Shown piece by piece: positions 9,555-31,250 of a stretch of 64,000 nucleotides of DNA (its first letter is position 1; each line of letters begins with the position of its first letter). The notes under the pieces were generated by a model. The model worked only from the letters and a program-made list of their open reading frames with translations, made no database searches and was not told where the DNA came from. Source of the DNA: Zootoca vivipara (taxonomy: Eukaryota). The DNA is taken from NCBI RefSeq assembly GCF_963506605.1, contig NC_083285.1, positions 39,246,001 to 39,310,000 of the forward strand, given 5' to 3'. The position numbers and the translations under genes were made by a program.

Positions 9555-11401
9555 CTAAAAATAATATAAACAATACTTTCACAACAGGAGATTGTGACAA
9601 AACATTACAAAAACATGATTAAATCAAATGAATTACCTAAAAGGTGCAGCAAAACCAGCAGTCCTGCTGCCATGCAGATAGTAATGCCACGTTTACTGTA
9701 TTATAAGCAGTAGTGGCTGCTGCAGTCTTGAAGAGGTACACACTAGATGGGGTTTCTTGCATTCACTTTATATAAAACAGAATAATTCAACCCCCAAGCC
9801 AGATATGCTGGAGCAATTGAGGTTCAGGATGGAGAATGTTCACATGCATGCACACACCCACACACACCCCAATATGATAATGGTACCCTTCATCCAATAT
9901 TCAGATGCATTTCTGCTGATTAGAGGAACAAAGGGTGATGAAGGGGAGTAAAAATGAGTCCTCATGCAAGAGCTGGCACAGACTTCGGGTTGCCTTTTAT
10001 AGTAAATATCCTAAACAGCTGTTTTGAACAGGACATAGCATAAAACCTCTATGCACACTCAAACGTGTGAAGATCCCAGACAGGAGCCACTGGGCACACA
10101 ATGCCTCAGTCTGCGTGAACTGCTAAGTTAAACTATGACTTAGCACAAATATGCAGCCTTCCAAAGGGGAGATTACAGCTGCTTTGCCCCTCCTCCTCTG
10201 GTCTTGCTGTGAGCTACCCCATGGTTTAGCTTAGCATGCCATTAGAACCCGTGCTCATGGCTTGTCTCCTCTAGGCAAACCACAAGCTGTAAACCAAGGC
10301 AAAACATTGGTTACAGCTTATGATTTGATTGGCTGAGACAAACCACAAGCCCAAGTTTGGACGTGCTATGCCAAACCATGCCTTGGCCCACAGCTGACAA
10401 GCAGCCATGATCTCCACTCTGGGAGCACTCACACTTGTGTATTTGCACTACTAAGCCATCACTGAGCTTAGTGTTTTTGTATGAACCAAGTTATTCTGAT
10501 GGACGTGGGAGTTTCTTCCACTTCCTAACCAAAAGTGTTTCCCATATAGAAAATCTGCAACAAATGAAGCATCTTGACAGTTACCGTAAATGCATTAGGA
10601 ACTTGGAAATGAAAAGTAGGCATACACAAGGAAAGCCACAGCTTCCCAGGCAATTATAGTTGCCATTCTAGCTGCATCAAAGTGTGCTTAACCAAGTGAG
10701 ATTAGTGTTCCAAGTATGATGAAAGTTATTCTGCCAGATATACTGAAGCCTCCAAAGCAGGCTTCAAAAAACCTTTTCGTTAAAAGTTCCATAACGTCAT
10801 TATTTTACTGAATGTTTTATCAGTGTAGCCAAATGGATGAGATCAGAGGCTACCAAGCAGAAAGCACAGACAATTCTGAATGAATCAGAAGCGGACCACA
10901 AGAGCTCTATGATAAGTTACATTGCCATAGCAGTGTTGGCGCGAGGGGAGGGAGGGGCAGCATCCCACTAATCTAAAAACCTCACAAACCGATTTATTGC
11001 CGGTTACATTTATGTACGGCACCGAGATGTAAAAATTGTATGGGCGAAGCCAATTGACAGGTGCTACAAACTGGAAGGACCGGCACGATGCAGCTGTGGG
11101 ATTCAAGCCTACATCCGTTTACCGGGTAGCAAATCCCATTGAACTCAACGGGACTTACTTCCGAGTAGCCACATGGAGGATTGCAAGGCAGGAACGCCGT
11201 CAGTAGTATGTTGCAGTGGAAGATAGGAGGAGGCGCCACGACGGGCCGCATGATGGTCCCTCCCGCCGTGAAGGGAGGGGCGCCGGCCAGGGCGCCAGGA
11301 GCCCCTCGCTCCCGAACTTGGGGGGGGAGGGAGCGGGGGTCACACTGCGGGACCGACACCTCCCTTCATTGCCTCCAGGCCACACACGGGCCTCCCCATA
11401 C

Positions 11402-11429
11402 CTGAAATTACCGCCAACGGCGCCGACAT
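11402..11429 (-). CDS. NUP205: NUP205 exon 1 coding part (start codon)
   Basis: ccaagATG TCG GCG CCG TTG GCG GTA ATT TCA G|gtatgg = MSAPLAVIS, in a CpG island; phase joins exon 2 correctly; resembles human MATPLAVNS. Confidence 0.9.
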
Positions 11430-12699
11430 CTTGGACGCTCACTGACTCGAGCCAAAGCGCCCTTGCAGCCGAGAAGACCCCAAAACAGAAAGAGGCGACT
11501 AAACCAATGCCTGATCAAGAAATAGCCCTCGGAGAGATGCACACATTTAGGCTGCTGAATAGCCGGACTCCTCTGTTAGCCAGCATTTACTACATCGAGC
11601 CCCACCCGGCTCTCAGTTCATTACAAAAACAAAACCGTTCAGCTTGAACATTTGGAGCACAGGCACAGTGTGGCCACTTAATCGGTAAAATCAGGACCCA
11701 GAAGCAAAGGATGCTGGGAATTCCGGCTCTTGCTCTCCTTCTGGTAGATAGGCGGGAAAGGGAAAAGCAGCCTTTAAGACTAAACGCTCCTCCTAGGGAA
11801 TAGTACGGCCTATTAAGCACAATGGAATTTACTTCTCAATAAGCTTGCATAGGATTGCACTGCAATGGGCTATTATCCACTGGTTTCAGGGTGATTGTTT
11901 CGTTCAACGTAGTTGGGGGGTAGGGAAGGACCAGCGAAGTTGCATACAAAAACAATGCTGCATCCTTTATCTTTCTTTAGGTGGGTATAGGTAATACCTA
12001 TACTCCCCCCCAACCTGAAAGTAGCAACAGAAGCCTCCATGGTAGATTTGCAGCTCTATCCAAGGCAAGGTCCCTGATCCCCATACAGTATTAGCTTGGG
12101 AAGAGTTTGGGAGGGGGGGGCGTATTGAAAAGCAGCCAACACATACCCAGAAGTGGGTGTTTTCGTACGAAGGATGACGGCTAAATCATCGGAAGCTTTT
12201 CTGATGAACAGTTGGGAAAGCAGCAAAACCAACCAAAAGTCTTGCTAGCACCCAAAACCTGACACCAGAGGGTAGAGACAAAGAGAGGCTGCATGTTGCA
12301 ATAGATAAAAGTACAACTAAAGAATAAGTATTTGTGTTTGTCTGTTATAAATATTTGTATATACACCGGCGCGCTTCGCGTTTAGTTAAATAGCAGTACT
12401 GTACAAAAAACAACAGCAGCAGCAAACGACAATATTCACAGCGGCCAAAATCTATAGGAGAAGTACAGCCAACAAAAATCCTAGCTACGGCGCTTCACAA
12501 GCGGGACTGCACCTGCTACAAAATATTCCCGCGTGGGAGTGGTACAGTGACAATAAAGTACTGTACAGTACAGTATTTCTAGTTCTATACAGTACAAGCC
12601 AGCAGCCGCCGCCACGCGCCTTCTAGCGGCTTCCTGTTTCCTCCCCGTCGCCCTATGTGCTCTTGCGCATGCGCGCTCGGAATAAAGTGCCGTCGGGCA

Positions 12700-12877
12700 A
12701 AAGCTGAACCGCATTTTCCTTTAGCAAAAGTCTGCGTCGCGTGGGCAGGTGACGGCGTCCCCGTCTTCCGTGTAAGGTCTCGGTTGCCAGTGACCTTCCG
12801 TCTTTTGGTAGAAGGAGCGCTGCCCTTGCCGCTGCCGTCGGGCACCTGGTCGCCGTGGAGCCGCGATAGCGAGGCGG
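12700..12877 (+). other. POLR3H: Probable non-coding first exon of POLR3H (start approximate), homologous to CNOT4 exon 1
   Basis: Strong donor CGG|GTGAGT at 12877/12878 in a CpG island; next acceptor ctttcag|G at 14617/14618, 23 nt before the POLR3H ATG. Confidence 0.7.
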
Positions 12878-12935
12878 GTGAGTGGAGCCACGAGGGCTGC
12901 TTGGCTGCTGCGAGAGAGCGGAGGCTTCCAGGGGA

Positions 12936-13026
12936 CATAGCTGCCAAGTTTTCCCTTTTCTCGCGAGGAAGCCTATTCAGCATAAGGGAATTTCCCTTAA
13001 AAAAAAGGGAGAACTTGGCAGCTATG
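12936..13026. mobile_element. 91-bp hAT MITE in POLR3H intron 1
   Basis: TIR CATAGCTGCCAAGTT...AACTTGGCAGCTATG; perfect 8-bp TSD CCAGGGGA at 12928-12935 and 13027-13034. Confidence 0.9.
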
Positions 13027-14640
13027 CCAGGGGACCTTTCAGGCCTCGGCCCGCTAGCGGGTTCCGGGGATCCCTCTGACAACAGGGCGGCTGGGAAGAT
13101 AGGAAGGAGGATCTGGAGAGCCAGGACGGCTCTTGTCCCGGTCACGCACATGGTTCAGCGGGCTGCCGTCCTAATGCACATGATCGTGTAAGCCTTAGCC
13201 TTCACGCACACCATTCTTCTGCTTAGCGTTTTTTATGTGCTAAGCATTTAATCTCATTTCATGAGAAAATTCTCTCTGGCAGATTACGTTTCTGTAGTGC
13301 AAAAGGTGCATTTTTAGAGTAAATGGGTTCAGGCCGTAGGTGTTTCTAGCTTTACGACAGCGAGGTTGCTACTCTGCAAATCAGTGCTGTGCAACGAAAT
13401 GGAAAACCAAACGTGCACGATGCTCAGTCGGTAGTTGGATATTCCCTCTTTCCCACCCCCACCCACATCCTCGCAGGAACTCTGTGAAGGTGGTAGGCTA
13501 AGAATGATTGAGGGGTCCATGATTATCTGGTGAGTTGCATGTCTCAGTAGGATTTGAACCTAGGGCTCCAGAGTCCTAGTCCAGTACTCCCAAGCATGGA
13601 AACATGCTGGTTTTAGAACTGAGCATGTTGTAGGGCAAATAAAATAGATGCACTTGAATTTGGTGCATGGCCCTGTGAGATATAGGAGTGCATCCCCAGA
13701 ACACGCCAATGTTTAACCTCAGAATTCTATGATTCTTCTTTTTTTACCTAAATGTTTTTCTATCAAATTGATGGTCATTAAATAATCTTAAGAGATTCCA
13801 AGGGCCAGTTTGGACATAACAATTCTGCTTAATAAAATAGGTCATTAATCCAAGACCAAGCCTTACACCAGCACACTCCCCCCCCCCCGCACTAGCTTCA
13901 AGGCTTTTATTGCGGTTACTTTAATTTTGGTCTTAAAAAGAAATCCTGATATGAAACCAAGTTCAAAGTTATCATTCACACAATCTGTTCTGGTTCTGTC
14001 CTGTGAAACTCTTCCTCCAGGAGTTTTTGAATGCCTCATAATCTTTAGAGCATATTTTAAAACCTTACTTTTTGGGAAAGCTTTTAATGTGCCCTAGTAC
14101 TTTAAATATGAGTTCTGTGTTTGCCATTTTAATTCTCAGCATAATTGAATGTATGTTAGCCTATTAAATTATGACAGTTTGATATACTGTACCACTTTCT
14201 GAGTTCATATGTTAAGAAAATGGTATTAAGTGTCCTAAAGTAACAAAACATGGCTTATTTTATGATAAATAGTATGTTTCACAGCACACTGCAGATAGTA
14301 CCGGTAGACATTTTCCAGCAAATAAGGTTGGAAAATGGACAAATGAAAAATGTATTAAGAATAACTAATGTAAAATCTGATGATACAATTCATAATCAAA
14401 TTAGCTTCCTCAGAATGGTTACAAAATTCTTTTCTTTAATAACCATTGATTTTTACAAGGAATTGAAATGCACACCAGATTAGGTCAATGGAACAAGACC
14501 CACCAGAGTCACAAAAATAACTTCAGCCTCTTTTCCCCTCCTGTCACCACCTGCTGTCACAACCATCATTGCAGAAAAGAACATTGTCTTGCTGACTCTT
14601 CTTTTTTCCTCTTTCAGGAACTTTACTTTTGTTGGCCACC

Positions 14641-14751
14641 ATGTTTGTGTTAGTGGAGATGACTGATACTGTGCGGATTCCTCCATGGCAGTTTGAAAGG
14701 AAGCTTAATGATGCTATCACTGAAGAGTTGAATAAGAAGTTAGCCAATAAG
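14641..14751 (+). CDS. POLR3H: POLR3H (RNA polymerase III subunit RPC8/RPC25) coding exon 1
   Basis: gccaccATG Kozak; [37 protein letters not shown]|gtaaag; exon begins at 14618. Confidence 0.96.
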
Positions 14752-15360
14752 GTAAAGGTTAAGTGTTGTAGGCCATGACTGACTAGAGGTTTTTATTGGA
14801 AAACAACTGTATTGTAAATGTGAAGATTTTTAGAAGCAGGCCCGTTTGTTGACTGAAAATAGCATCTGTGGCTTAGTGCTACCGTAATAAACAGTATAAT
14901 GTCATATGTAAGACTAGGCATGATGCAAAATCACATACGGTACTTAACTGGTGTAATTGCAGTGGCTACAGTAGTTTGCACAACTGGAAAAATAGCTCTA
15001 CCAGATTTTGACCAGTCTAAATTCAGTATCCAAGTGAGATGCAATGTAGTATAAGACTGGAATGTAAATGGGAGATAAAAAAAAATAAGTAGAAACTAGA
15101 AGTGGAGCATTTGTTTAGGAAATGCACTCCAATTTCTTCTTAGCTATCTGTCATCTTTCTCTACTGCTTTTGCCAGCTGAGGCCGGCACATATAATTTTC
15201 TGCTAAACAGTTATTTTGAATCAGTTCACCAGTTTGGTTCATCTGCACACCTTTCCTTGTGCATAAACTCTGGCATGTTGTTTCAGGAAGGCTTAACACA
15301 TTTCCTCTAGTTGCTGGAATTTATTGCTCTCTGGATTTTGTTTTCCCCACCCCCAAACAG

Positions 15361-15457
15361 GTTGTGTATAATGTTGGCCTCTGCATCTGCCTTTACGACA
15401 TCACAAAACTGGAAGATTCCTACATATTCCCAGGAGATGGTGCATCACATACAAAAG
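15361..15457 (+). CDS. POLR3H: POLR3H coding exon 2
   Basis: [32 protein letters not shown]; 97 nt. Confidence 0.96.
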
Positions 15458-15917
15458 GTTTGTCTCTTATTATTCTTAATATGAGCACTTTGGATTGGTA
15501 GGAGAGTTGACAACCACAAAATTTAAGAGAGGTACCTACAGCAATATGAACATGAGTAGACAGCACTACAGTACTTTAAGATCTCTATTTTCTTCATGTG
15601 GGAATCTACGTTTTGCTAGTAAAGCAGCAGATACTTTCTGTAGCAAATACATTTGGGAACTGCTTCATAGGCAGAAATCAGAGGAAGTCCCTTTCACTTC
15701 GTTTAATCCTTAGAACTTGCTATCCCTTAGGAGAGTTATGGTGACACGCTAGTTATGCTGCAGTACCACATTTTCTTACCTATTGCTAATATTCTCAAGG
15801 AAGTAGGCTTGTTCTACATGTTTACATATTGATGTTCTAGGTTGGAGAATTAGAAATACAGTATGATATGCTGACCTATGGCATGGTTGGGGAGCAACTT
15901 CAGCAGAAGGACTAGAT

Positions 15918-16053
15918 CAGGCATCCCCAAACTTCGGCCCTCCAGATGTTTTGGACTACAATTCCCATCATCCCTGACCACTGGTCCTGTTAGCTAAGGA
16001 TCATGGGAGTTGTAGGCCAAAACATCTGGAGGGCCACAGTTTGGGGATGCTTG
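15918..16053. mobile_element. Palindromic hAT MITE (CAGGCATCCCC family)
   Basis: 8-bp TSD GACTAGAT. Confidence 0.9.
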
Positions 16054-17381
16054 GACTAGATCCAGAAGTGAGCAGCCCTCCATGAGCCACTTTGACAGGT
16101 GGTCACTTAATTGGTCACGCTTATTGCTTAGACATACATTATCTCCTGTGTAGGATCTGATGTGCAGGCACACATTAAAAATCATGGTATAAATAGCTTG
16201 CAGTACCACGCTATATATGCCAACTTTGGAAGCAAGTTTACGTTTGGGACAATCCCAAGTAAGTGGGTACCGGATGTGGCCTAGGCTTTGTTTTCAGATT
16301 CACATTTGAAAAAGCAGGGTCCTTGTGCCTTTAAAAGCTGCGTCTCAACTATCAGGTCTAGCAAGACATAGTTGATTTCCAATAGCAAACATGAGGCTGC
16401 CAGGGGCATGTATTACCCACGCACCACATGGCAGCCATGTTGTATTATGCCGTGTCCCTCCATGGCAACCATTTTGTAACTAGTGCCAACAGGGCTCTCA
16501 AAATTCAAAATGTGCCAATTGGTCCAAAAAGGTTGGTGATCCCTGTCTTAAATTCTCAACTTATCACACTTTTCTACTTTAGAATGCTGATGGATTTATC
16601 AGTCATGGAATGGTGACAGTATATTACTTGCAATGTGCATAATATGTACCTTTATGCTCCTGCATAAATGACACTTGTTCTTATCCTTTCCCTTGACTTG
16701 TTTTGCTATTTTTTTATTCATAAGTTTCTTACGGAAAATGAAAGGTACTGACAGACTTTTTCCCCAGTGTGTATTTCAGTTGTTCACTCTAGAAACTGCT
16801 GGTGTCTTGACCTTCATTTATTTTGTATCTAATATCTGACAAGACAAATCTAAAAGACCACTTGGGTGCAAACAGGGCTACTCTAATCTTCATTTCCCTT
16901 ACTGCTGCAGTTCACTCAGCACTGTCCTATTTGCTCTAGTTACCGATCAAAACAAGTCTATTTTCAGTCTGCCAGGCTTGCAGAATCTCAAAAAGCTGAC
17001 ACAGCTGCCCAGAAACTGGACTGATGCACATCATTAGAGCAATGACATAGAAGCATAGATTGAAAGCTTAGTTTTCCTTAGGATTTCTCAGACAGTTTTT
17101 GAGAGCTGGAGAGGTGCAATTAATGATGTGTGATCATGGCTTTTGAAATGCTTAGTCCCCTAAACATGAGTGTCTCCAGCTGTGTGCATGTCTGAGTGAA
17201 GATACTGGATTTTGTCAAGTAGAGAAAGTCAGAAGCAAGGGCCAACTCCACCCACCCATGCTTTGCCAGTATCATGGTTTTGGGTCTTTTGGTTCTGCCC
17301 TGCATTTAATACAGCATTTTACACCTTCCCATTGGAGCCCATGTCCTATATTTAAAGAGACAAAACCCTTATGCTTCTGTT

Positions 17382-18915
17382 GTTGTTGTTGTTTAGTCGT
17401 TTAGTCGTGTCCGACTCTTCGTGACCCCATGGACCATAGCACGCCAGGCACTCCTGTCTTGCACTGCCTCCCGCAATTTGGTCAAACTCATGTTCGTAGC
17501 TTCGAGAACACTGTCCAACCATCTTGTCCTCTGTCGTCCCCTTCTCCTAGTGCCCTCAATCTTTCCCAACATCAGGGTCTTTTCCAAGGATTCTTCTCTT
17601 CTCATGAGGTGGCCAAAGTATTGGAGCCTGAGCTTCACGATCTGTCCTTCCAGGGAGCACTCAGGGCTGATTTCCTTAAGAATGGATAGGTTTGATCTTC
17701 TTGCAGTCCATGGGACTCTCAAGAGTCTCCTCCAGCACCATAATTCAAAAGCATCAATTCTTCGGCGATCAGCCTTCTTTATGGTCCAGCTCTCACTTCC
17801 ATACATCACTACTGGGAAAACCATAGCTTTAACTATACGGACCTTTGTCGGCAAGGTGATGTCTCTGCTTTTTAAGATGCTGTCTAGGTTTGTCATTGCT
17901 TTTCTCCCAAGAAGCAGGCGTCTTTTAATTTCGTGACTGCTGTCACCATCTGCAGTGATCAAGGAGCCCAAGAAAGTAAAATCTCTCACTGCCTCCATTT
18001 CTTCCCCTTCTATTTGCCAGGAGGTGATGGGACCAGTGGCCATGATCTTGGTTTTTTTGATGTTGAGCTTCAGACCATATTTTGCGCTCTCCTCTTTCAC
18101 CCTCATTAAAAGGTTCTTTAATTCCTCCTCGCTTTCTGCCATCAAGGTTGTGTCATCTGCATATCTGAGGTTGTTGATATTTCTTCCGGCAATCTTAATT
18201 CCGGCTTGGGATTCATCTAGTCCAGCCTTTCGCATGATGAATTCTGCATATAAGTTAAATAAGCAGGGAGACAATATACAACCTTGTCGTACTCCTTTCC
18301 CAATTTTGAACCAATCAGTTGTTCCATATCCAGTTCTAACTGTAGCTTCTTGTCCCACATAGAGATTTCTCAGGAGACAGATGAGGTGATCAGGCACTCC
18401 CATTTCTTTAAGAACTTGCCATAGTTTGCTGTGGTCGACACAGTCAAAGGCTTTTGCATAGTCAATGAAGCAGAAGTAGACGTTTTTCTGGAACTCTCTA
18501 GCTTTCTCCATAATCCAGCGCATGTTTGCTATTTGGTCTCTGGTTCCTCTGCCCTTTCGAAATCCAGCTTGCACTTCTGGGAGTTCTCGGTCCACATACT
18601 GCCTAAGCCTGCCTTGTAGAATTTTAAGCATAACCTTGCTAGCGTGTGAAATGAGCGCAATTGTGCGGTAGTTGGAGCATTCTTTGGCACTGCCCTTCTT
18701 TGGAATTGGGATGTAGACTGATCTTCTCCAATCCTCTGGCCATTGCTGAGTTTTCCAAACTTGCTGGCATATTGGGTGTAGCACCTTAACAGCATCATCT
18801 TTTAAAATTTTAAATAGTTCAGCTGGAATATCATCACTTCCACTGGCCTTGTTATTAGCAGTGCTTTCTAAGGCCCATTTGACTTCACTCTCCAAGATGT
18901 CTGGCTCAAGGTCAG
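17382..18915 (-). mobile_element. RTE-BovB LINE, 5'-truncated, uninterrupted RT ORF (17393..18895, 500 aa), in a POLR3H intron
   Basis: RT motifs QGCILSP and LRYADD; (CAA)n tail; perfect 12-bp TSD TATGCTTCTGTT at 17370-17381 and 18916-18927. Confidence 0.95.
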
Positions 18916-19192
18916 TATGCTTCTGTTAAACAACTACAAACATTTTGCCACACTTGCTTTGGTGATTGTAGGAACAGTCACTGAAACTTAGGAGGTTTTG
19001 GCTTGAAATGGGAATACCACTGTATGGTGATATTTGAGCCTGCTCAGCCCATTCATTATTTATCCAAGTTTTTTCAGAAACTAGTAAATAGCAAAATGCT
19101 AGTATTGGATTGCTATTTTAGCAATCCATAGGGAGGGAGGGAATCGTGACTTGTTCAAGCAGCATATTGTGTTGTTTCTTTTTCTTTTTCAG

Positions 19193-19279
19193 TGCATTTT
19201 CGGTATGTTGTGTTTCACCCCTTTCTGGATGAAATTCTGGTTGGAGTAATAAAAGGCTGCAGTCTGGAAGGAGTTCGGG
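19193..19279 (+). CDS. POLR3H: POLR3H coding exon 3
   Basis: (V)[28 protein letters not shown]; 87 nt. Confidence 0.95.
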
Positions 19280-19769
19280 GTAAATTTTAACTTTTACTAG
19301 TAATTCACCAAATAATCACAGGAATATTGTGTGTAGGACTGCAGTGGGTGTCTAGAATTATGGAATATTATACCAAGATAACCAGCAGATATCTCAAAAG
19401 AAAGACTGTTCTATTAATAAAGTTTGACGTTATTATGGTTAAGATGTTTGGAATCACTCCTTAATAGCAGCAAAACATAGCCAAAAGAACTGAACTTCAG
19501 TTTCTTTTCTGAAAAATAAATAAAAATAAGAATATAGAATGAAAGGTGGAAAAACATATTTGAGGCTTAAAGTTGTTCTCCTTTATAGTCCTGATGGGTG
19601 TTCCAATTCTGCATTTATTAAATTTACAGTATAGCGGAAAGAATGCTGGACATAGGTTCAGATTCCTTATTGGACATGCCACTAGGTGATGGCATGGGGA
19701 AAGCTTAAATTCTAGGAGTCACATTGCATCCATCTTGCTTCTTTATTAATCTGAACTTCTTTTTTGTAG

Positions 19770-19833
19770 TTTCACTTGGGTTCTTTGATGACATCATCAT
19801 TCCTCCAGAATCCCTACAGCAACCTGCCAAGTT
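19770..19833 (+). CDS. POLR3H: POLR3H coding exon 4
   Basis: (V)[20 protein letters not shown](F); 64 nt; followed by GTATCCTC. Confidence 0.95.
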
Positions 19834-21154
19834 GTATCCTCTAAACAGTTCCATGATGCTGGATGTCTAAAGATGTATAATATGAAATCTACTTCCCTTC
19901 GGATGGAGTCTATTTTTACTTAATGCAAAAACCCCTATGAGTATGTTGCAAAACGTTCCAGTAGATTGTGTTACTTAATGCTAGACTAATATTAACATTA
20001 GGGACGTGGGTGGCGCTGTGGTCTAAAACAGAGCCGAGGGCTTGCCGATCAGAAGGTCAGCGGTTCTAATGCCTGCGATGGGGTGAGCTCCCGTTGTTTG
20101 GTCCCAGCTCTTGCCCACCAAGCAGTTCGAAAGCACTTCAAGTGCAAGTAGATAAATAGGTACTGCTCCGGCAGGAAGGTAAATGGCGTTTCCGTGCGTT
20201 GCTCTGGTTCGCCAGAAGCGACTTAGTCATGCTGCTGTCTGCGGATAAACACCGGCTTCCTAGGCCTATGGAGCGAGATTAGTGCCGCAACCCCAGAGTC
20301 GTCCGTGACTGGACCTAATGGTCAGGGGTACCTTTACCTTTAATATTAACATTCAGTATTCCACAGCTCAGGAAAACCTCAATGTAATTTTTGAACAACT
20401 GGATGTATCCAACACTTTCACAATGGATCTTTCATTTACCCTCATCCCTCACTGCCCCCCCCAAGCTCATTTAGAGAGGAATTATCATTGTGAACTGTGT
20501 CATCTGGTGCGGCAGGTGTAAAAGGTCAGGCTTGCAGGGCACAAGATTCCTCCGCCTAATCTTGGGCAACCTCCCCAGGCACAAACTCTGTAGCCATGGA
20601 TGGACACAGCCTTCAGTTTTTGGTAGGGCCCCCAGACTGTAGGGAAGCTTTGTGGAAACTGTTGGGGAAGAGGAAAAGATCCATTGCACAAAGCTGCCTT
20701 CCACTTGCACATTGGATACAACTCAGATTAGTTGGGTTGAGGGCATGGTGTGAAGGGCATTAATAGGAAGAGATCACTTGAGGTTTGGGAAGCGGCAGTC
20801 CAAGTCAAACGTCTGATTTGTTTCCATCCTGAGCCCTGTGGTTAGTTGCTGGATTGAATTCAATTTTCTTGCTTCATAACGTAAGAGACATTTATTAGCA
20901 GATCTAGCATGGTCTGTGTTCTGTGAGAAAACCTTGCACAGGGGACAGTGAAATGTATTTTCCAGAATGCATTTAGAATAATTTGCATCAGAAAATTTTC
21001 CATTGCTGTAGAGTGATCTAATTTAGCATGCTTATTTTACTTGTACTTAGTTAAAAAGCTGTGAGAGCCAAATCTCAGAAAAGGGATTTCATACTTCAAT
21101 TTAAACTTCTATGCCTTCTTATCCCACTGTTGCCTTAACTTTCTATGTGCCCAG
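19834..21154 (+). other. POLR3H: U12-type (minor spliceosome) GT-AG intron of POLR3H
   Basis: 5' site GTATCCTC; branch point CCTTAAC at 21133-21139, 15 nt before the 3' splice site; reading frame requires these boundaries. Confidence 0.9.
20001..20340 (+). mobile_element. Sauria/Squam1 SINE (inside the U12 intron)
   Basis: GGGACG..GGTGGCGCTGTGG tRNA-like head, ACCTTT tail; TSD TAATATTAACATT. Confidence 0.9.
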
Positions 21155-21362
21155 TGATGAAGCAGAACAAGTATGGGTTTGGGAATATGAGACTGAAGAA
21201 GGAGCCCATGACCTGTATATGGATACAGGAGAGGAAATCCGTTTCCGTGTGGTTGATGAAACTTTCATTGACACATCCCCAACAGGCCCAAGCTCTGCAG
21301 AGCCCTCCACCTCTAGTGCCACAGAGGAGGTGCAGAAGAAGGAAGCCCCCTACACACTAGTG
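21155..21362 (+). CDS. POLR3H: POLR3H coding exon 5
   Basis: [35 protein letters not shown]...KKEAPYTLV; ORF 21111..21374; 208 nt. Confidence 0.96.
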
Positions 21363-21396
21363 GTAACTATTTAACACTACTCCTTTCTACATAAAA

Positions 21397-21750
21397 GGGA
21401 CCCAGGTGGCGCTGTGGGCTAAACCACTGAGCCTAGGGCTTGCTGATCAGAAGGTCGGCGGTTCGAATCCCTGTGACGGGGTGAGCTCCCGTTGCTTGGT
21501 CCCGGCTCCTGCCAACCTAGCAGTTCGAAAGCACATCAAAATGCAAGTAGATAAATAAGAACCGCTATAGCGGGAAGGTAAATGGCGTTTCCATGTGCTG
21601 CTCTGGTTTGCCAGAAGTGGCTTTGTCATGCTGGCCACATGACCTGGAAGCTATACGCCGGCTCCCTCGGCCAATAATGCGAGATGAGCGCGCAACCCCA
21701 GAGTCAGTCACGACTGGACCAAATGGTCAGGGTTCCCTTTACCTTTACCT
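21397..21750 (+). mobile_element. Sauria/Squam1 SINE
   Basis: Full length; flanking repeat CCTTTCTACATA; ~35 nt downstream of a POLR3H donor. Confidence 0.9.
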
Positions 21751-21974
21751 TTCTACATAGGCTTTTGAAATATCCTTTCACTACCTAAAAGTAGTCACAT
21801 CCTTGGTGATAGGATGTAGACCTTATTCTTTCAGCCATTTATAATTGTGAGGAAAGGGTATGAGGATCTCTAAGTGACCTCTGAAAAACACAGAATTCAG
21901 AGAATACTGCAGATTAAATGGATAATCCAGATTTTCATGTGCTAAATTCTAACATATATTCTTTCTCTGTGCAG

Positions 21975-22028
21975 GGATCTATCAGTGAACCTGGTCTGGG
22001 TCTCCTATCCTGGTGGACAAACAGTTAG
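21975..22028 (+). CDS. POLR3H: POLR3H last coding exon
   Basis: GSISEPGLGLLSWWTNS*; total CDS 621 nt = 206 aa; AATAAA hexamers downstream (~22544, 23076, 23163, 23557). Confidence 0.96.
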   Translation, partial: GSISEPGLGLLSWWTNS

Positions 22029-24419
22029 CCAAAGGGGGAGACTTCCACAAAATGGGCATTTACCAGATTGGAAAAGCCACTGTGTGCATTTTTCTCTCCT
22101 TAGAAAGCAACTGCAGAATGGAAGCTTTGTGTTTCTATTTCTACTTTGCCCTACTTCTGAAGTAGAAGACGAGTGGGAACATCCAGTGTGATGTCATCAA
22201 CACAGAATATTTGCATACCATGGCCCTGTCAACAAACTCTTGTGGTTCTGATCTTTCCACCTAGCAGAACTGGGTACAAGAGCCTAGGAAGAATCTGCTA
22301 CCCTAAAAGAAATTTAAGACAGGCCTTGTGTTTAAAGCAGATGCAAGAAGAAACTTTGAAGAACTTCAGTCTAGAAGAAACCAGTAGCGATTTGAGAGGT
22401 GGAGAGGAATGATATTATGAAAGCTTGCAGTCATTTTACTGAATCCCTCTTGTTCCTTTTCCCCATTTGGATGGAGGTGTTTCTGACAGTGGAGGAAATT
22501 CATGCCCTTGGCTTTTAAAGGTCACATACTGATGAGGAAGATGAATAAAGCTAGGGCAAGGGTAAGAATCGAATCTATATAGCCATCAGGCTGCCTCCAA
22601 TGGGTCTTCCTGAATATCTTGGAACTATTTGCCCTGGAAAATTCAGTGAGCCACTGTACTTGCAGAACACACTAATAACTGGGGTTAGTAAGTCTGCAGT
22701 GTTTAGAGAGCAAACAAACCTTGTTAGCTACCCTTCTTAATCTTGCTGTCTTCCATGAAAACATGTGACTTCAGTTTGTTTTTAACTTAGAAACGTAGAT
22801 GGACTATAGCCTTTTTTCCCTCTACAGAACAAAATTCTAATGAAAGCTGCTGTAGATATGAATGACACCTCAAAACTCAACAACTTTTGTTGACTTTCTG
22901 TATAAGGAGGAAGAGATTCACATCTTGAAGTAGATAATACTTCCTTGGGCATTGGATAGGAGTGCAAACATAGACAATGGCCATTCAGTTTTTGGTCTTT
23001 GACTGCATTGTAGTGGAAAATATAGAACATTGGGCAACAGTGCAAAAGGCACACAAAGACACAATCACAATACACAATAAAAACATTCCTATGGCATAGG
23101 ACTATGTATGTGGACCACTAATGAGAAAAGCAAAGCTAGGACTACCAGAGCATCAGGTGATAAATAAAGCTCTTCATTTTAAGAAGGCCTTTGACGTGCA
23201 TGTCTTATGGTAACATACTTGAATAGAGCCTGCTTCTTGATGACAATATATTTGGCTTACTGGTGAAGTCACTCTGACTTGGCTGTTCCTGCTTCAAAGC
23301 CTTGATTGGAGGTTTTAATGCTGTTGTAACCCACTGAGGGTTGTGCAGGACATCTGCTTCTGATGTTCCTATGTGAGGTGATTAATGCAGAGCCAATGTC
23401 TTTCTAATAAATATTGCTAGTGTATAATGACTGGAACAGCAGCTTTGGTTATAAAGGATATACGAGTTAACTATACAGCCAGAGAAGTGGCAAGGCCATC
23501 AGGTTTTTAACTGCTTTTCAATGAAAGCCTCCTGAAATGTAGGGACCTGAAGTTCTAATAAACTTTGCACTGGTTTAAATCTTCTATTTTATTGTATAGT
23601 GCTGCCTAAAAGAATTTACATTTTGTGTGTGATGTTGACATGACACATCAACCAATTGAATAGGTACACAGTTTTTAAGCACCTAAATAAAGTTCCCCAG
23701 AAATAACCACTTTTCTTTCTTGCCATTAAGCAAAGGCTTTTCTATTGTGACTCCGTCAATATAGAATCTGAACAAGCTTAATTAATAAATACACTCAGGC
23801 TCCTAGCCAATAACCAATTATGTGTGACTTAGCACCACTGAAATCATTAAGACTTTTGAGTAGACATGATTTTTTATTTAAAATATAGTTTAATCATTAG
23901 AATTTCTGTTCAATGACATTTTAAAAAATCATATATTTAAAAAATAAGAAATTATAAACTCAACCACTGCTTTAAAATGCTTGCTGAACCAGAGAGTCAT
24001 GTAGCTGAAGTTCAAGAAGTGCATTGTCTAAGCTTTGTCGAGGGTTGGGCCCACTGCACTGATTGTACAACATTGTACTGCTTTTATTCCACATGGTTGG
24101 AAGGACACATTTGAAATCCATAAGTGAACTTTAGAGAATATTAGAATCATCGTCTTTATTTTAACCCTTGTATATAACACACTTCAATGTGGAAAATTCC
24201 CAAGATGACTTATCAATGCATCCAGCAGAGTAACAAAGTAATCCAAAAATTAAAACATAAACATAAACCAAAGGCAGTGTTAAATTCACAGCTCAAAGGA
24301 CTGCAGAAATAAGCTTTGTGTGTGTGCCATTTTCTGACCAGTCAATGTTTTAGTAAATCTGCCACAATTCTTGAGTAATGCTATTCCAAGATGGCCTAGA
24401 TTAAAAATGGAATCAAATA

Positions 24420-24872
24420 CAGGTGAAACTCGGAAAATTAGAATATCGTTGAAAAGCGCATTTATTTCAGTAATGCAACAAAAGGTGAAACCAATATATG
24501 AGATAGGTGTATGTATGACATCCAAAGCAAGATATGTCAAGCCTTTATTTGTTGTAATTATTTGTCGTTAGGTGGGTCAATTATAAATGGAATGTAATTA
24601 ATGACCAAACTGCGGGAGGCAGTGCAAGACAGGAGTGCCTGGCATGCTATGGTCCATGGGGTCACGAAGAGTCGGACACGACTAAACGACAACAACAATT
24701 AATGAAATGCAATAGCGATGTTTATTTTTGTATTATTGTAAGTATTTGTTTTATTACTGTGGAATTTCCAAAAGAAAGCATTTGTAAAAATTAAAAGAAA
24801 AATTAAAAATAAGTTGCATTACTGAAATAAATGCACTTTTCAACGATATTCTAATTTTCCGAGTTTCACCTG
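24420..24872. mobile_element. Tc1/mariner-type MITE with ~60-bp TIRs
   Basis: TA|CAGGTGAAACTCGGAAAATTAGAATATCG ... CGATATTCTAATTTTCCGAGTTTCACCTG|TA. Confidence 0.88.
24605..24696 (+). mobile_element. BovB extreme 3' fragment nested in a Tc1/mariner MITE
   Basis: Near-identical to the 3' end of the 17.4-kb BovB; TSD AATTAATGA at 24596-24604 and 24697-24705. Confidence 0.9.
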
Positions 24873-25405
24873 TAAAATTGGAATTTAAAGCGCCTTATAA
24901 AATTCATAACAAGCACTCATAACATCTAATTCACAATACAAAACATTAGTCTAAAACCGCCCCCAGCAATTTGCACATAGCTCCCGTGTCAAAAACTGAA
25001 TTGCTAGCATTTGATCTATACTAAAATATGGCGGAAGCCTTTTAGCTGGTTGCAGCCCCCGCAACCCCTCACTTGGAAACAATTCGTGTTTACCCAACGT
25101 TGTTGTCGGAGCGAGTTCTTGGCATCCCAGCAGCTTGTTTCCAGCACATAAACTGCCTCGAAATCTCCCCTTGCCGAGGCGTTTCCTGTTCTTGGAGCCT
25201 ACGTATTTTAAGTCTTGGTGGGGATTAGGGAGGGAAGAGATTGCGTTGACATACCTTGCTTGGCTTCATTTCTAATTTTATTTTGAATGCAAGCGAAGGC
25301 CAGTTTGGAGTATCGCAGAATTCTTGGGCGCCTCGGCCCAACAAGCCTACGAAGGAAAGGTGAGAGAGACCGGAGCTCCCCGATAGGCAGGAGCGGCCCC
25401 TAGGG

Positions 25406-25775
25406 CGCGAACTATCGCCGACACCGCGGCCATTTTGGAAAACCGGCACGGCGTGACGTTTCCTAAAGCGCCGTCGTCGACGAGAGGCCCCGAAAGCAGC
25501 AGAGGCGCCCAAAGTAACGCCGGGATAGAAGCGTCAGTTTTTTAGGCTAGAGGGACCCCGCTGCAGATTCTCAGAAGGCTCCCTCAGACGACAGCCGCTA
25601 TTCCTCTTGTTATGCGGCAGAACAAAGTCGTAATCTGTGCTAACGTAATGCTTCAGACACAATGACAACCAGGTAAGGCTGCCTTGACGAATCCTGAATG
25701 TGAGGACCCAGAAGCAATGGACGCTGGGAAGTGTAGTCCAAGCCTGCCTCGTGGTTGGTACTGTAGCGGGAAAGG
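25406..25775 (-). pseudogene. Decayed duplicate of NUP205 exon 1 and promoter (copy B), still CpG-rich
   Basis: Collinear with 11402-11761 at an offset of ~14.0 kb; 26/28 identity 25703-25730 vs 11693-11720; ATG at 25433 reads MAAVSAIVR vs MSAPLAVIS; orthologous donor lost. Confidence 0.8.
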
Positions 25776-25920
25776 ATGTACTCGCTCGGTTCTGAGAGTC
25801 AAGCGTCTATTCAGCAAAGCCGGTTTCTTCAGTTTACTTACCTTAATTTAAAAATAAAATCTTTTGCATTATCCAGTCTCTGTGTGATTTCAAGGTTGCT
25901 TTCAGGCGGAATTAGCAATC

Positions 25921-26240
25921 GTAAAGGTAAAGGGGCCCCTGCTGACCATCAGGTCCAGTCATGTCCGACTCTGAGGTTGCGGCGCTCATCTCGCTCTATA
26001 GGCCGAGGAAGCCGGCGTTTGTCCGCAGACAGCTTCCGAGTCATGTGGCCAGCATGACAAAGCTGCTTCTGGCGAACCAGAGCAGCGCACGGAAATGCCG
26101 TTTTCTTTCCCGCCTGAGCGGTCCCTATTTATCTACCTGCACTTTGATGTGCTTTCGAACACACCCCGTTGCAGGGATTCGAAACGCCGACCTGATCAGC
26201 AAGCCCTAGATTCTGTGGTTTAACCCACAACGCCACCTGG
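25921..26240 (-). mobile_element. Sauria/Squam1 SINE (internal deletion)
   Basis: AAAGGT tail repeats at left, reverse-complement head at right. Confidence 0.88.
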
Positions 26241-26471
26241 TTTTGCTTAAATATAGCAAGGCATGCACATGCCCAAAATAAGTAGCTTCGGAAGGTTTCA
26301 AAAGTATTCAAGAATAAGACTATAAGAATAACACTTTAAGGCTGGGTTCCAGTATTTACATTTTACCTGGAGCGAGCATCGCTGGAGCTAATGGCTCTTA
26401 CTACGGTAGTAGAAATGTATATGCTTGCACTGTTACTCTCCAGCATACCACATAAGTGTAGTTGAAGGATA

Positions 26472-26822
26472 AAGGTAAAGGTAAAGGGACCCCTGACCAT
26501 TAGGTCCAGTCGTGACCGACTCTGGGGTTGCGCGCTCATCTCGCATTATTGGCCGAGGGAGCCGGCGTATAGCTTCCAGGTCATGTGGCCAGCATGACAA
26601 AGCCGCTTCTGGTAAACCAGAGCAGCACATGGAAACGCCGTTTACCTTCCCGCTGTAGCGGTTCCTATTTATCTACTTGCATTTTGACATGCTTTCGAAC
26701 TGCTAGGTTGGCAGGAGCTGGGACCAAGCAACGGGAGCTCACCCCGTCACAGGGATTCGAACCGCCGACCTTCTGATCAGCAAGCCCTAGGCTCAGTGGT
26801 TTAACCACAGCGCCACCTGGGC
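26472..26822 (-). mobile_element. Sauria/Squam1 SINE
   Basis: Full length; TSD GTAGTTGAAGGATA. Confidence 0.9.
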
Positions 26823-28200
26823 CCCACGTAGTTGAAGGATAGTAGATTTTAAATCAAACGGATTTCCTGGTCAGTATTGGTTGTTTGATTTACAAACACT
26901 GGAAATGTTAATGTGATACGTTCAGTTGCTTGGAAGAAGCTTTATTCAGTTTACAGTTGTATTTAGAATAAGGAGTGCAAGGCACCAGCACTTGTGAAAA
27001 AAATAGTTGCTTTATGCTGAGCTATGGAAAGTGCATTTCCTACACCCCAGCATAAATTTGCTATAAACACCACCAGCTCATATACAGTACTGAGCTGATT
27101 ACTTGACACTGAGCACTGAGGTTAGACAACACTTCTTAAAATAAAATTAAAAAAGCTCCCTTATGTACCTCACTGTGTGTTCATACCTTCTCATGTGAGT
27201 TATTTATTACGTTGGCTTAACAATATTAATGCAAATCCATAGCACTTTTTTCTTCTTTACATTGTTCTACTTGTGTCTCTAAAAGACCATGAATTGACAA
27301 CCTATTACAGGATCAATGGACTTCTGGTTCAGAATGATTAATATGCTCATCTCGCATATTGCTGGAATAGTTGGGATATAAGCACTCAGGAGTGTTTGGT
27401 GGTGAATAGAAATTATTTTATATTTAATTTCTTATTGTTCAAGGTGATCTTATGGATATATTTTTTACTCAGTAGTAGTAAGTACTCAGTACTAGGCTTG
27501 CGCCCTAGTAAATATATTTAGGGTTGCAGCCTTTATCTCTCCTACCTTCTTATAAGCACCATTTACCTTTAGGGATACTCCATTTAATACACTGTGTCTA
27601 AAATTAATATTTTATTGTGTACTATTTGTACAAGGTTATTAGTATACAAGGGTACACAACATTATATATTCATGTATGTATATGCTGCCTTATAGAGTTG
27701 CATAGGCAAAATTGACAAATTTCTGCCCACTAGGCAATTACAGTCCACAACAGTGGGGGAAACTACAGAGGGCGGAAAAGACAAAGATAGAGCAGGAAGA
27801 ATGTGGGCAAGTGCCATTGCACTTACTTCATTCAAAAGGAATTTAAAGAATCCTGTAGTCTGTCAAGGGAAAACCTTCAAGAATAAATTCCAGGAGCCTC
27901 CCAAGCTTCTCCCTGTGGTTTTCAATGCATTACAATTACAAATGAAATACAGTATCATTGGGTCAAAAGGTTTAGATGGAGATCCACAAGGCCCTATGCT
28001 TTTAAAAATATTTTCAGGGTTTTCCAAACTTGAGTTTCAGCTGTTTTTGGACTACAGTTCCCATCATCTCTGCCCACTGATCCTGCTAGTTAGGGATGAT
28101 GGGAGTTGTAGTCTAACAAAAGCTGGAGACTCAAGTTTGGAAACCCTGAGCTAAGTTAAACGAATGAGAATCATTGAGGGGGATGTGGGCTCAGGTACCA

Positions 28201-28460
28201 CCATTGCTTGGTCCCAGCTCCTGCCAACCTAGCAGTTCGAAAGCACGTCAAAGTGCAAGTAGATAAATAGATACCACTCCAGCGGGAAGGTAAACAGCGT
28301 TTCCGAGCGCTGCTCTGGTTTGCCAGAAGCGGCTTTGTCATGCTGGCCACATGACCTGGAAACTGTACGTCAGCTCCCTCAGCCAATAACGCGAGATGAG
28401 CGCCAAAACCCCAGAGTCAGTCACAACTGGACCTAATGGTCAGGGGTCCCTTTACCTTTA
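28201..28460 (+). mobile_element. Sauria/Squam1 SINE, 5'-truncated
   Basis: Body and ACCTTT tail match the other copies. Confidence 0.85.
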
Positions 28461-30329
28461 CGAGATCAGGGGTCAGCAAACTTTTTCAGCAGGGGGCTAG
28501 TCCACTGTCCCTCAGACCTTGGGGGACGGACTATATTATGGGGGGGAAATGAACGAATTCCTATGCCCACAAATAACCCAGTGATGCATTTTAAATAAAA
28601 GCACACATTCTACTCATGTAAAAACACGCTGATTCCCGGACTGTCCACGGGCTGGATTTAGAAGGCAATTGGGCCTTAGTTTGCCTACCTATGTACTAGA
28701 TTCATGTACTATGTACTATGTACCTATGTACTAGATTCATAGGTGGCCTCTGTGGCACAGAGCTTCTTTGGATGATTGGGTTGGGATCGAAGGACTCAGG
28801 TGGTTCTTAACATATCCTGGACCCAAGTTGTTCCAAGGTTTTGTATATTAGCACAAAACTCTTGAACCCAGCTTGGTAGCATATGGGAAGCCAGTGTATA
28901 TATTTTAGCAGAGGTTTATATGGTGCTGGCTATCTGTCCCCATAAGCAGTCTAACTGTTCCATCTTGCACTAGCTGGAGGTTCTGCATCAGGCTCAAGGG
29001 CCAATCCACATACTGTATACTGCTTTGCATGCACTACAGTGGCCAGGTTATCTCATTACCAAATGAAGCTGGTAAAAGGCACTCAACCACAAGAGGCTCC
29101 TTGGACAGAAAGATTACAAAAATATATCCAAACAAAAATATACTCTTAAGCTATGTACCTGATCCATTACAGGGGGAAAATATTATACGGTATGCTAAAG
29201 CCTAATGTTTAGGATGTCACTATACTGTATTAAAATTCCTTAGGCTACAGCAGACAGCAGAATATTCTTGTGTTTATAAAAACAGCCAGGAGCGTCTGCC
29301 TCCGGTCACAGTTAAACTGTTGTTTAGTAAAAATGAATACAAACCGAAAATGAAATGAAATGAAATAAAATAGCTATGCATCACAGCAAGCATCCTGAAG
29401 TAAAACAATTACTGGTTATATCAGTGCAAACATAACCAGCTATGTAGCCCCAGCCCCCATAAACAGTACTGTAAATATATTGTAATGGGAGCAATGCACA
29501 GCAATATCAGCTAAAACGTCTCCTACCGTAGGTAATATTGCGCCCCTGGCAGAACCATCCAGATTGCGCCCCCTAGCCACGGACAAATTAGCTATTCTTT
29601 CCACCTCTCCTCCAACACCCCCTCCACCCATTCAATTCACCCTCTGTTGAAAACCATTTCTTATGAGACAATAATCGATATTTATATTTATGGACATAAT
29701 TTGAAGCCGATTTTCCGCCCCTCAATCGCCTGCGCCCCTGGCGAGGGCCCACCTCACCACCCTCTAGCTACGGGCCTGCCTGGGTGACAGCCCGTCTCTT
29801 GAATGTACTGTACGTATTTTTAAGTAATTAGTGCATATGAGAACAAGTCTCAATGGTGAATCTGTGTGTCATACAAGGATTACTACCGCTAGGAAATCCC
29901 CAGAGGGTCACAGCAGAACAACGAAGAATATTGTTTGCCACCGACCATGCCAGGTTTTGTTGTGATACTGTATAAGCTTTTGCCGACCGGAGTCCACGAA
30001 TCATGAATATTCATGGCACTGTCTATCCCATCCCTCCGTGAACCCCTTTCCGGCCGTGTTTAAAATGATCGGAATCTGTTGCATCCTTTTGAAAAGGGGA
30101 GGGATTCTTAAATGCAGGCTCCCGCTCTCTAGGAATGTGTGCCGGAGGAAGCGGAGCGGGCTGGGGTGGATAAGCGAACCAGGAGCATTTCAAACGAACC
30201 ACTAGCTGACGTTAAGCCAGCTCAATCCCTCTGATTGATTTGGAACAAACCGGTTTAAATGCCACAGCTATCACTTCAGGGTTTCCTGGGCGACAGTGTG
30301 ACCGCCTTGTCAACAGCCTAACCCACCCC

Positions 30330-31250
30330 CTTTTGAACCCAGGGAAGGACACGCTCGCCGGTTGCCCTAGTTCCCTCCCCCGCAGTAAAGACTACAACTC
30401 CCGTCATGCTCTCTCTCGCGTCGCGTCGCCTTCTACCTTTTTCCTTTCCCCCGCACCCGCCTCTCCGGCGGCTCGTGCGCATGCGCCTTGGGAGCAGCGT
30501 CCGGGGCAGGCAAGCAGTCTCTCCCTAATGTAAGATGGTGGCCGGTCTGGCAGCGGAGCGCGCAGAGCCTGGAGATTACCCGTCTCTCACATAAAGGTCG
30601 TCGGAGGAGCCGCCTGGACCCCTTCCCCGCTGCTACAGAAGCCGAGCGAGCGAGTGAGCGGGAGGAAGGGAGCGCGAGAGGGTATCGCCGCCCCCGCCGC
30701 CAGACAGCCGGTCGCCGTGGAGCAGGGACGACGAGGCGGCGGGTGAGTGAGCAGCCGGGGCTGGGGGAGCGCTAGCCGGTGCTGCCTAGCTACGAGAGAG
30801 CGGAGGCTTCGCGAGGAGCCTGCAGGCCTCGGCCATCCCTCATGCGCCTGCTCCAGACCCTGGGCCGGCGCCGGGGCTCCCTCTGGCCGGAGGGGCGGGA
30901 AGGGGGGCTGGGGCTAGCCAGGGCGGCTCCTGCCCCTGCGGCGGCGGCGGCGAGGGCCGGCTCGCCTCCCTCAGGACCGCAAGGGTGGGCTGAGGGGTGG
31001 CCGGCGCCTGGCCGCTCGCGCCGGAGACCAGCTGGATGTAGAGGGGGCTCCGAGGGAGGCGGAGGCCACGCTGTGGCTGCTCAGGGCGGGGGCTCGGGAG
31101 TCAATAGAGGCGGAGGGCTCCCGGGCAGCGCCTCCCTCGCATCCCCATCCCCACCCCGCCGCTGCCTCTCGCGTGTGCGTGTTCAGGAGGGGAGAGGGAA
31201 CCCGGGACCTATCGCTCATAGGCTTTGCTCCGCTGCTGGGTCTGATAAGG
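30330..31250 (+). promoter_or_regulatory. CNOT4: CNOT4 CpG-island promoter
   Basis: Very GC/CpG rich; ZNF143-type ACTACAACTCCCGTCATGC from 30391; NRF1 palindrome TGCGCATGCGC at 30476-30486. Confidence 0.85.
30500..30742 (+). other. CNOT4: CNOT4 non-coding exon 1 (start approximate)
   Basis: Donor CGG|GTGAGT at 30742/30743 in a CpG island; coding starts in exon 2 (acceptor 46517/46518). Confidence 0.75.

Follow-up and report, generated by a model that had tools for sequence, protein, structure and literature searches.

POLR3H lies between two diverged copies of a NUP205/CNOT4 promoter block in Zootoca vivipara, a probable relocation with capture of a first exon

INTRODUCTION

Several described processes come close to the arrangement reported here for a locus of the lacertid Zootoca vivipara, in which POLR3H (encoding RPC8) lies between two diverged copies of a block carrying NUP205- and CNOT4-type first exons and promoters. 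The locus was analyzed in a 64-kb window (contig NC_083285.1, positions 39,246,001 to 39,310,000), numbered below from its first nucleotide; the copy upstream of POLR3H is called copy A and the downstream one copy B. Chimeric genes formed by DNA-level duplication capture the promoter and first exon of another gene. Under duplication-degeneration-complementation (DDC; subfunctionalization), duplicates each keep a different function. Templated insertions of the fork stalling and template switching/microhomology-mediated break-induced replication type usually carry flanking duplications of a few bases to tens of bases. Gene movement by double-strand-break repair is known from plant examples (PMC3615480), and staggered breaks at Drosophila inversion breakpoints duplicate sequence of up to ~1.9 kb (Ranz et al. 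2007, PMC1885836).

The Zootoca locus resembles each of these systems in part. As at the Drosophila breakpoints, non-repetitive sequence that includes gene parts is duplicated on either side, and the copies have diverged by substitutions and small deletions; however, the Drosophila copies are inverted and flank inversions, whereas those of Zootoca, a vertebrate, are direct and flank what would be an inserted gene. Gene movement by break repair would likewise copy a foreign segment with its introns into a break and duplicate local sequence, but the Zootoca block is far larger, and its edges are eroded, with no readable junction microhomology. Like a chimeric gene, POLR3H would join a promoter, first exon, and splice donor derived from CNOT4 to coding exons of its own. 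In contrast to that class, the captured exon is non-coding and leaves the protein unchanged, CNOT4 would keep its own copy, and the POLR3H gene that moved would be the sole copy, not an extra one. The split of a two-function block between its copies, with the NUP205 start in copy A and the predicted CNOT4 start in copy B, is reminiscent of DDC; unlike in DDC, the spare half of copy A appears to have gained a client gene, and the spare half of copy B is still promoter-like. Finally, divergent genes, CpG islands, and YY1-, NRF1-, and ZNF143-like words recall bidirectional CpG-island promoters, but each copy has two separate islands, and the halves of copy B lie 4.65 kb apart.

RESULTS

Gene order in the window is NUP205 (minus strand), POLR3H (plus), and CNOT4 (plus). 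The POLR3H body is preceded by NUP205 exon 1 and a CNOT4-type exon 1, pointing away from each other, and is followed by a NUP205-type exon 1 and the putative CNOT4 exon 1 in the same arrangement. An initial annotation made from the sequence alone had proposed two sets of collinear, same-orientation matches between these flanks. Self-alignment of positions 11001-13500 against 25001-31500 (blastn, word size 7, scores +1/-1) bore this out, yielding five collinear plus/plus high-scoring segment pairs (HSPs) of 64 to 69% identity (Table 1). The chain of HSPs scored 131, compared to a mean of 25 (standard deviation, 13.5; maximum, 61) over 200 local dinucleotide shuffles, 29 for the reverse-complement control, and 17 for the reversed control. 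When YY1-, ZNF143-, and NRF1-like cores were masked, the chain still scored 94 (shuffle mean, 21; maximum, 75), and three HSPs (scores of 24, 33, and 23) each exceeded the best shuffle HSP (20) with order kept. Smith-Waterman scores were 28 for the left halves (z = 12.0) and 44 for the right halves (z = 13.2), whereas pairing these CpG islands in the four non-cognate combinations gave z values of ≤2.7, and reverse complements remained at background. No third copy of the block segments or of their perfect cores was found within the 64-kb window; therefore, a dispersed repeat family as the source of the shared words, an alternative named in the initial annotation, was rejected. Together, these data establish that the two blocks are an old, diverged direct duplication, specific to cognate halves.

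The similarity is not confined to motifs but spans the NUP205 start codon region, 5' untranslated region (UTR), the 3'-terminal 30 nt of exon 1, and intronic sequence. Both copies also share the order and similar spacing of four landmarks: the ATG, a word resembling the ZNF143 Staf-binding site (SBS), an NRF1-like palindrome, and a GGCGG/GTGAGT donor (the slash marks the splice junction here and below). Between the alignable patches, no alignment was obtained for the center of the left half (11512-11679) or for spacer against spacer. Beyond the patches, homology was detected neither between NUP205 intron 1 and the 22- to 25.4-kb region nor between POLR3H intron 1 and CNOT4 intron 1, and unalignable flanks of 1.5 kb (13140-14617) and 3.4 kb (22029-25405) border the POLR3H body. 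In copy A, the right-hand homology is interrupted by a hairpin miniature inverted-repeat transposable element (MITE). With the MITE removed, the main right HSP became 12828-13051 against 30690-30834 (146 columns; score, 44), which recovers the ends first proposed for the right halves (13050 and 30834). A Podarcis genomic open reading frame (P0278) reads across the site with no insertion there; the MITE is therefore recent, younger than the split from Podarcis. The spacers differ in length about as initially described (~0.85 versus ~4.65 kb), and that of copy B holds at least 1.27 kb of short interspersed element (SINE) and MITE copies, which had no Pfam, Rfam, or tRNA match.

In the left halves, NUP205 uses copy A, as had been claimed. 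On the minus strand, positions 11429-11402 read ATG TCG GCG CCG TTG GCG GTA ATT TCA G/gtatgg, and this exon (ATG at 11429, donor after 11402) joins the exon 2 acceptor at 9554 in phase to give MSAPLAVISAASLWGPYK, which we take to resemble the human N-terminus. The relic in copy B kept its ATG (25433-25431, minus strand) and reads ATG GCC GCG GTG TCG GCG ATA GTT CGC..., but it lacks the homologous donor, and its reading frame ends at a stop after 28 codons. A YY1-like word lies at the NUP205-type ATG. Upstream of it, the left halves share a 28-nt word, TTCCCAGC(A/G)TCC(T/A)TTGCTTCTGGGTCCT, with two matches in the window where none is expected by chance; it resembles the ZNF143 SBS consensus.

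In the right halves, the NRF1-like palindrome TGCGCATGCGC has exactly two matches in the window (12664 and 30476), one per copy, 213 nt from the donor in copy A and 266 nt in copy B. Both right halves contain the run GGTCGCCGTGGAGC; positions 12828-12877 plus donor align with 30690-30742 plus donor; and homology continues ~200 to 260 bp beyond the donor into both first introns, including a perfect 18-nt match (CGAGAGAGCGGAGGCTTC) and further similarity up to 13139 and 30936. On this side, an SBS-like word (30391-30409) and the AAGATGGTGGCC word are present in copy B and absent from copy A. The copy that serves POLR3H has lost SBS-like and YY1-like words that are present in the copy assigned to CNOT4.

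Use of the copy A right exon by POLR3H is documented by the Podarcis muralis RefSeq RPC8 model XP_028601954.1 (P0163), a protein of 283 amino acids with a 77-residue N-terminal extension. The extension maps to 12669-12879 with 71 to 78% amino acid identity (tblastn/BLASTP): residues 1 to 70 fall in the copy A right exon (residues 31 to 70 at 12760-12879), and residue 71 onward falls in POLR3H exon 2. Residues 54 to 69 also match copy B at 30691-30738 (tblastn). A region-restricted protein search with the extension returned Podarcis sequences only. The model starts at an ATG within the NRF1-like palindrome. Because the frame of the extension contains two stops and one frameshift in the Zootoca window, the extension is probably a translated 5'UTR, an annotation artifact, with the true start at MFVLVEM (ATG at 14641). 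On this alignment, the non-coding exon 1 of POLR3H and its donor duplicate those putatively assigned to CNOT4, and the splice to exon 2 is seen in the Podarcis model. The suggestion that duplication had given POLR3H a ready-made promoter was thus surpassed, since a first exon and donor would have been captured as well.

On the CNOT4 side, the sole CpG island preceding the ATG of CNOT4 (46603), on the same strand, is the 30.4- to 31.2-kb region; SBS-, NRF1-, and YY1-like words lie in this region, and a consensus donor comes after them. The idea that each copy kept one of the two original genes therefore stands for NUP205 in copy A, by the phase join, and is a prediction for CNOT4 in copy B.

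CpG-rich zones in the window lie at 11 to 13.2, 25 to 26.5, and 30 to 31.5 kb, against a background CpG observed/expected ratio (o/e) of 0.1 to 0.3, and all four half-blocks are CpG islands. The term bidirectional promoter block, used in the initial annotation, fits the divergent orientation of NUP205 (minus) and POLR3H (plus) at copy A but is otherwise loose, since each copy consists of two separate islands. In copy A, these are separated by ~0.6 kb of CpG-poor DNA (o/e, 0.27 to 0.47), with 944 bp between the SBS-like and NRF1-like words and 1.24 kb between the NUP205 ATG and the known start of POLR3H exon 1. The sharpest island in the window, at 25300-25600 (23 CpG per 200 bp; o/e, 1.2 to 1.26), belongs to the copy B relic and keeps YY1-like and full SBS-like words. 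Working halves would be split between the copies in that the NUP205 exon of copy B is dead, but not in the sense that this half has lost its promoter character. CpG islands decay if methylated in the germ line; because the relic is still dense in CpG, its composition suggests that it very probably stayed a promoter-like element. The island could drive an as yet unannotated transcript that runs antisense in the direction of the 3' end of POLR3H. A strong minus-strand donor, AAG/GTATGT, lies ~180 nt downstream of the relic ATG, around 25255.

Aligned sites differ between the copies at proportions of 0.19 to 0.31 (pooled, 0.254; Kimura two-parameter distance [K2P], 0.31), with K2P of 0.37 to 0.39 in the left halves and 0.23 to 0.33 in the right halves, values of similar order. 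Exon 1 differs by ~10% of nucleotides between Zootoca and Podarcis, as estimated from amino acid differences. Given ~25% divergence between the copies compared to ~10% from Podarcis, and if the lacertid split dates to a few tens of million years ago, the duplication would be very roughly 100 million years old, with an uncertainty of at least 2-fold either way.

To place the locus in context, we compared gene order elsewhere. Presumably CSDC2 is the C-terminal partner in two teleost gene models (P0256 and P0245) in which RPC8 is fused to a protein with a cold-shock Pfam domain. In human 22q13.2, the tabulated order is PHF5A, ACO2, POLR3H, CSDC2, PMM1 (PMC12580483), and human 7q33-q35 holds NUP205, CNOT4, STRA8, and SLC13A4 (PMC4433680). 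Sheep chromosome 4 has NUP205, CNOT4, STRA8, and SLC13A4 in one block, with POLR3H not listed (PMC12717993). A chicken copy number variation paper mentions POLR3H and ACO2, without positions. A literature search found no publication naming POLR3H, NUP205, and CNOT4 together, and a squamate-directed search returned nothing relevant. Because the human and teleost data place POLR3H by CSDC2, this adjacency is likely old, and POLR3H is, by parsimony, the likely mover into the NUP205/CNOT4 interval.

POLR3H has seven exons and six GT-AG introns, mapped with the Podarcis protein, which confirms the earlier statement that the gene contains introns; a retrocopy was rejected on these introns. No POLR3H pseudo-exons were found elsewhere in the window. 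Gene identities were assigned by searching exons one by one. The 9322-9618 segment (minus) matches residues 9 to 60 of NUP205 in PDB chains 5ijn_D and 6lk8_A (phmmer, single exon); 21105-21371 (plus) matches RPC8 residues 118 to 189 (single exon versus PDB chains); and 46486-46782 (plus) matches the RING domain of NOT4 chains 1e4u_A and 1ur6_B (single exon versus PDB). Further NUP205 exons (minus) extend to position 1, and further CNOT4 exons (plus) lie at 49.4, 54.1, and 55.9 kb. Between 22 and 31 kb, neither ACO2, CSDC2, nor other gene relics were detected (19 open frames versus Pfam; Rfam; tRNA search).

Several repeats were noted alongside these genes. Palindromic repeats of ~150 bp with the ZNF143-SBS-like word GGACTACAATTCCCATCATCC occur at 4865-5013, 15905-16063, 28038-28149, 43079-43225, 51312-51420, and 61399-61535; such repeats could spread binding sites of this kind genome-wide. 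A SINE-like family of ~350 bp has seven copies (20000-20342, 21387-21752, 25919-26240, 26465-26825, 28201-28463, 36519-36802, and 41167-41534), of which POLR3H introns contain two and the copy B spacer three; those in the 10.5- to 32-kb region have no tRNA-like part (ARAGORN). Intron 3 of POLR3H holds, at 17396-18925 (minus), an uninterrupted reverse-transcriptase open reading frame of 510 amino acids from a long interspersed element (PF00078, E = 2.5e-41), which by eye we take to be BovB/RTE-like. Within CNOT4 introns, a CpG-rich element is repeated at 55103-55571 and 61067-61305, which accounts for the isolated CpG-rich kilobase at 55 to 56 kb as repeat sequence, not as a promoter island. 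At 48560-48660, also in a CNOT4 intron, (TA)n lies beside (GA)n microsatellites.

Table 1. Positions of the features of the locus in the 64-kb window
Feature	Position	Strand	Remarks
HSP 1	11406-11511 ~ 25410-25521	plus/plus	64.6% identity
HSP 2	11680-11761 ~ 25690-25775	plus/plus	67.4% identity
HSP 3	12617-12681 ~ 30427-30493	plus/plus	69.1% identity
HSP 4	12828-12935 ~ 30690-30817	plus/plus	66.7% identity
HSP 5	13057-13139 ~ 30864-30936	plus/plus	67.5% identity; past the end given in the initial annotation
Copy A left half	11402-11761		NUP205 exon 1, 5'UTR, promoter; alignable patches 11406-11511 and 11680-11761; z = 12.0
Copy B left half	25406-25775		Relic of NUP205 exon 1/promoter; strong CpG island
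Copy A spacer	11762-12616		855 bp; CpG-poor middle; no repeats detected
Copy B spacer	25776-30426		4651 bp; repeats at 25919-26240, 26465-26825, 28038-28149, 28201-28463, 28467-28675
Copy A right half	12617-13139	+	Copy of CNOT4 promoter/exon 1/intron 1 start, now POLR3H promoter/exon 1/intron 1 start (predicted); z = 13.2
Copy B right half	30427-30936	+	Putative CNOT4 promoter, non-coding exon 1, intron 1 start; donor GGCGGCGG/GTGAGT at 30742/30743
NUP205 exon 1, coding part	11402-11429	-	ATGTCGGCGCCGTTGGCGGTAATTTCAG/gtatgg
NUP205 exon 2	9400-9554	-	Acceptor tttttag/CTGCC; lower end approximate
ZNF143-SBS-like word, copy A	11693-11720	-	TTCCCAGCATCCTTTGCTTCTGGGTCCT; 291 nt upstream of NUP205 ATG
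SBS-like word, copy B	25703-25730	-	TTCCCAGCGTCCATTGCTTCTGGGTCCT, preceded by ACTACA; 297 nt upstream of relic ATG
NRF1-like palindrome, copy A	12664-12674	+	TGCGCATGCGC
NRF1-like palindrome, copy B	30476-30486	+	TGCGCATGCGC
POLR3H exon 1	12669-12877	+	Non-coding in this species; 5' end is a minimum; donor GGCGG/GTGAGT at 12877/12878
Hairpin MITE, POLR3H intron 1	12936-13026		91 bp; 8-bp target-site duplication CCAGGGGA at 12928-12935 and 13027-13034; interrupts homology
POLR3H exons 2-7	14618-14751 (ATG 14641), 15361-15457, 19193-19279, 19770-19833, 21155-21362, 21975-22028 (stop TAG)	+	Mapped with Podarcis protein
CNOT4 first coding exon	46603-46776	+	MSRSPDAKED...CPACRK; matches 1e4u_A/1ur6_B; ATG at 46603

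DISCUSSION

The observations are best explained by relocation of POLR3H into a duplicated NUP205/CNOT4 block with capture of an exon, a reading to which we assign a probability of about 0.65. In an ancestor of this lacertid, on the order of 100 million years ago, an intron-bearing POLR3H body of ~9 to 12 kb, from exon 2 to the 3' end, would have moved at the DNA level to a site between head-to-head NUP205 and CNOT4. The same or a closely linked event would have left direct copies of a block of 1.7 kb or more on either side of this body, the block comprising NUP205 exon 1 and promoter, the spacer, and the CNOT4 promoter, non-coding exon 1, and ~200 bp of intron 1. The minus strand of the upstream copy would then serve NUP205, and the CNOT4-derived promoter, exon 1, and donor on its plus strand would start POLR3H transcripts, which would splice from the captured exon 1 to exon 2, the site of the ATG. 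The downstream copy would serve CNOT4, its NUP205-like exon having no donor and yet remaining what appears to be an unmethylated, promoter-like CpG island.

Two routes to this state can be envisaged. In route (a), breaks with a stagger of at least 1.7 kb would have received the insert and been filled in, all in a single event; this would be the kilobase-scale target-site duplication proposed in the initial annotation and the equivalent, for an insertion, of the duplications at Drosophila inversion breakpoints. In route (b), the block would first have been duplicated in tandem, and a POLR3H body lacking a promoter would then have entered downstream of the CNOT4-type exon of the upstream copy. 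With the block edges eroded, both leave one picture, and both do so without a harmful intermediate. A more specific version combines route (a) with the fate of the orphan half: one rearrangement with breaks staggered by ~1.7 kb or more would have relocated the sole POLR3H and duplicated the promoter pair with the neighbors undamaged, the half at 25.3 to 25.8 kb remaining an active promoter for ~100 million years. As a whole, we offer this version only tentatively and regard it as rather unlikely. An antisense or upstream transcript may originate from the orphan half; alternatively, this half may form a boundary between POLR3H and CNOT4.

The alternative that survives best separates the two steps in time: a tandem duplication of NUP205 exon 1 and CNOT4 exon 1, with POLR3H later inserted in the upstream CNOT4-type intron and capturing its exon. 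It would produce the same final layout through intermediates that are all viable, each gene using its nearer copy, and the extension of the right homology into intron 1 is as expected if POLR3H landed inside. The K2P values of left and right halves, being of similar order, do not separate one event from two. However, this history needs two independent rare events at one 2-kb spot, and we know of no lineage with the intermediate tandem block. We therefore consider it possible but doubtful.

The order NUP205-POLR3H-CNOT4 could instead be shared by a wide clade, such as all sauropsids or amniotes, with the duplicated block an old feature of the locus and not something produced by a relocation in the squamate lineage. 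Strong divergence of the copies does imply an old event. Against this stand the position of POLR3H by CSDC2 in human and teleosts, its absence from the mammalian NUP205/CNOT4 gene lists, and the lack of any publication found that names the three genes together; this possibility is improbable.

Very improbable is the view that no duplication took place and that the similarity reflects the common grammar of housekeeping CpG-island promoters, with their YY1-, ZNF143-, and NRF1-type words, GC-rich 5'UTRs, and donors. The strongest cores do look like transcription factor words (NRF1-like, SBS-like, and YY1-like at the ATG), and a repeat family in this genome has a similar SBS-like word. Nonetheless, three HSPs beat every shuffle after core masking, non-cognate islands fall far below cognate z values of 12 to 13, and non-motif sequence is aligned with order, strand, and spacing kept in both halves. 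Chance or motif similarity was rejected on the masked-core HSPs and the non-cognate island controls. An assembly artifact, whether through a mis-join or through collapse or duplication of a contig, was likewise rejected as scarcely credible: although a single assembly was examined, the copies differ by ~25 to 35%, too far for an assembly duplicate, the window has 0 runs of N, and the exon 1-exon 2 junction is used in the independent Podarcis muralis RefSeq model.

Several points weigh against relocation with exon capture as set out above. Evidence for use of exon 1 is confined to Lacertidae: among POLR3H proteins gathered from gecko, snakes, monitor, skink, horned lizard, birds, tortoise, and frogs, the N-terminal extensions of rattlesnake (Crotalus), horned lizard (Phrynosoma), skink (Lerista), tortoise (Chelonoidis), and frogs had no significant match to either block. 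The assignment of 30.4 to 30.74 kb as CNOT4 exon 1 is putative, drawn from position, CpG island, and donor. The polarity of the move is read from mammals and teleosts only, not from birds, turtles, tuatara, or other squamates. A tight head-to-head NUP205/CNOT4 block in the ancestor is putative as well, given that in human the start sites of these two genes lie ~48 kb apart. Finally, the SBS-like word of the left halves (~20 nt) recurs in looser form in the palindromic repeat family; the downstream part of the 28-nt word is common to copies A and B and not to that family.

If relocation with exon capture is correct, the locus is a clean new example of known processes, of value as a case study and not as a new principle. 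Single-copy housekeeping genes rarely move: the promoter is normally lost, and insertion often harms the target locus. The present locus suggests how both obstacles may be avoided: a promoter pair duplicated around the newcomer supplies it with promoter, exon, and donor and leaves the residents intact. It also offers a natural experiment in promoter evolution, with two copies of the same promoters having long served different genes and a copy whose exon is dead persisting as a CpG island. If the age of ~100 million years is true, the layout is predicted in many squamates; and if the order is common across squamates, it would be a rare genomic change that could serve as a phylogenetic marker.

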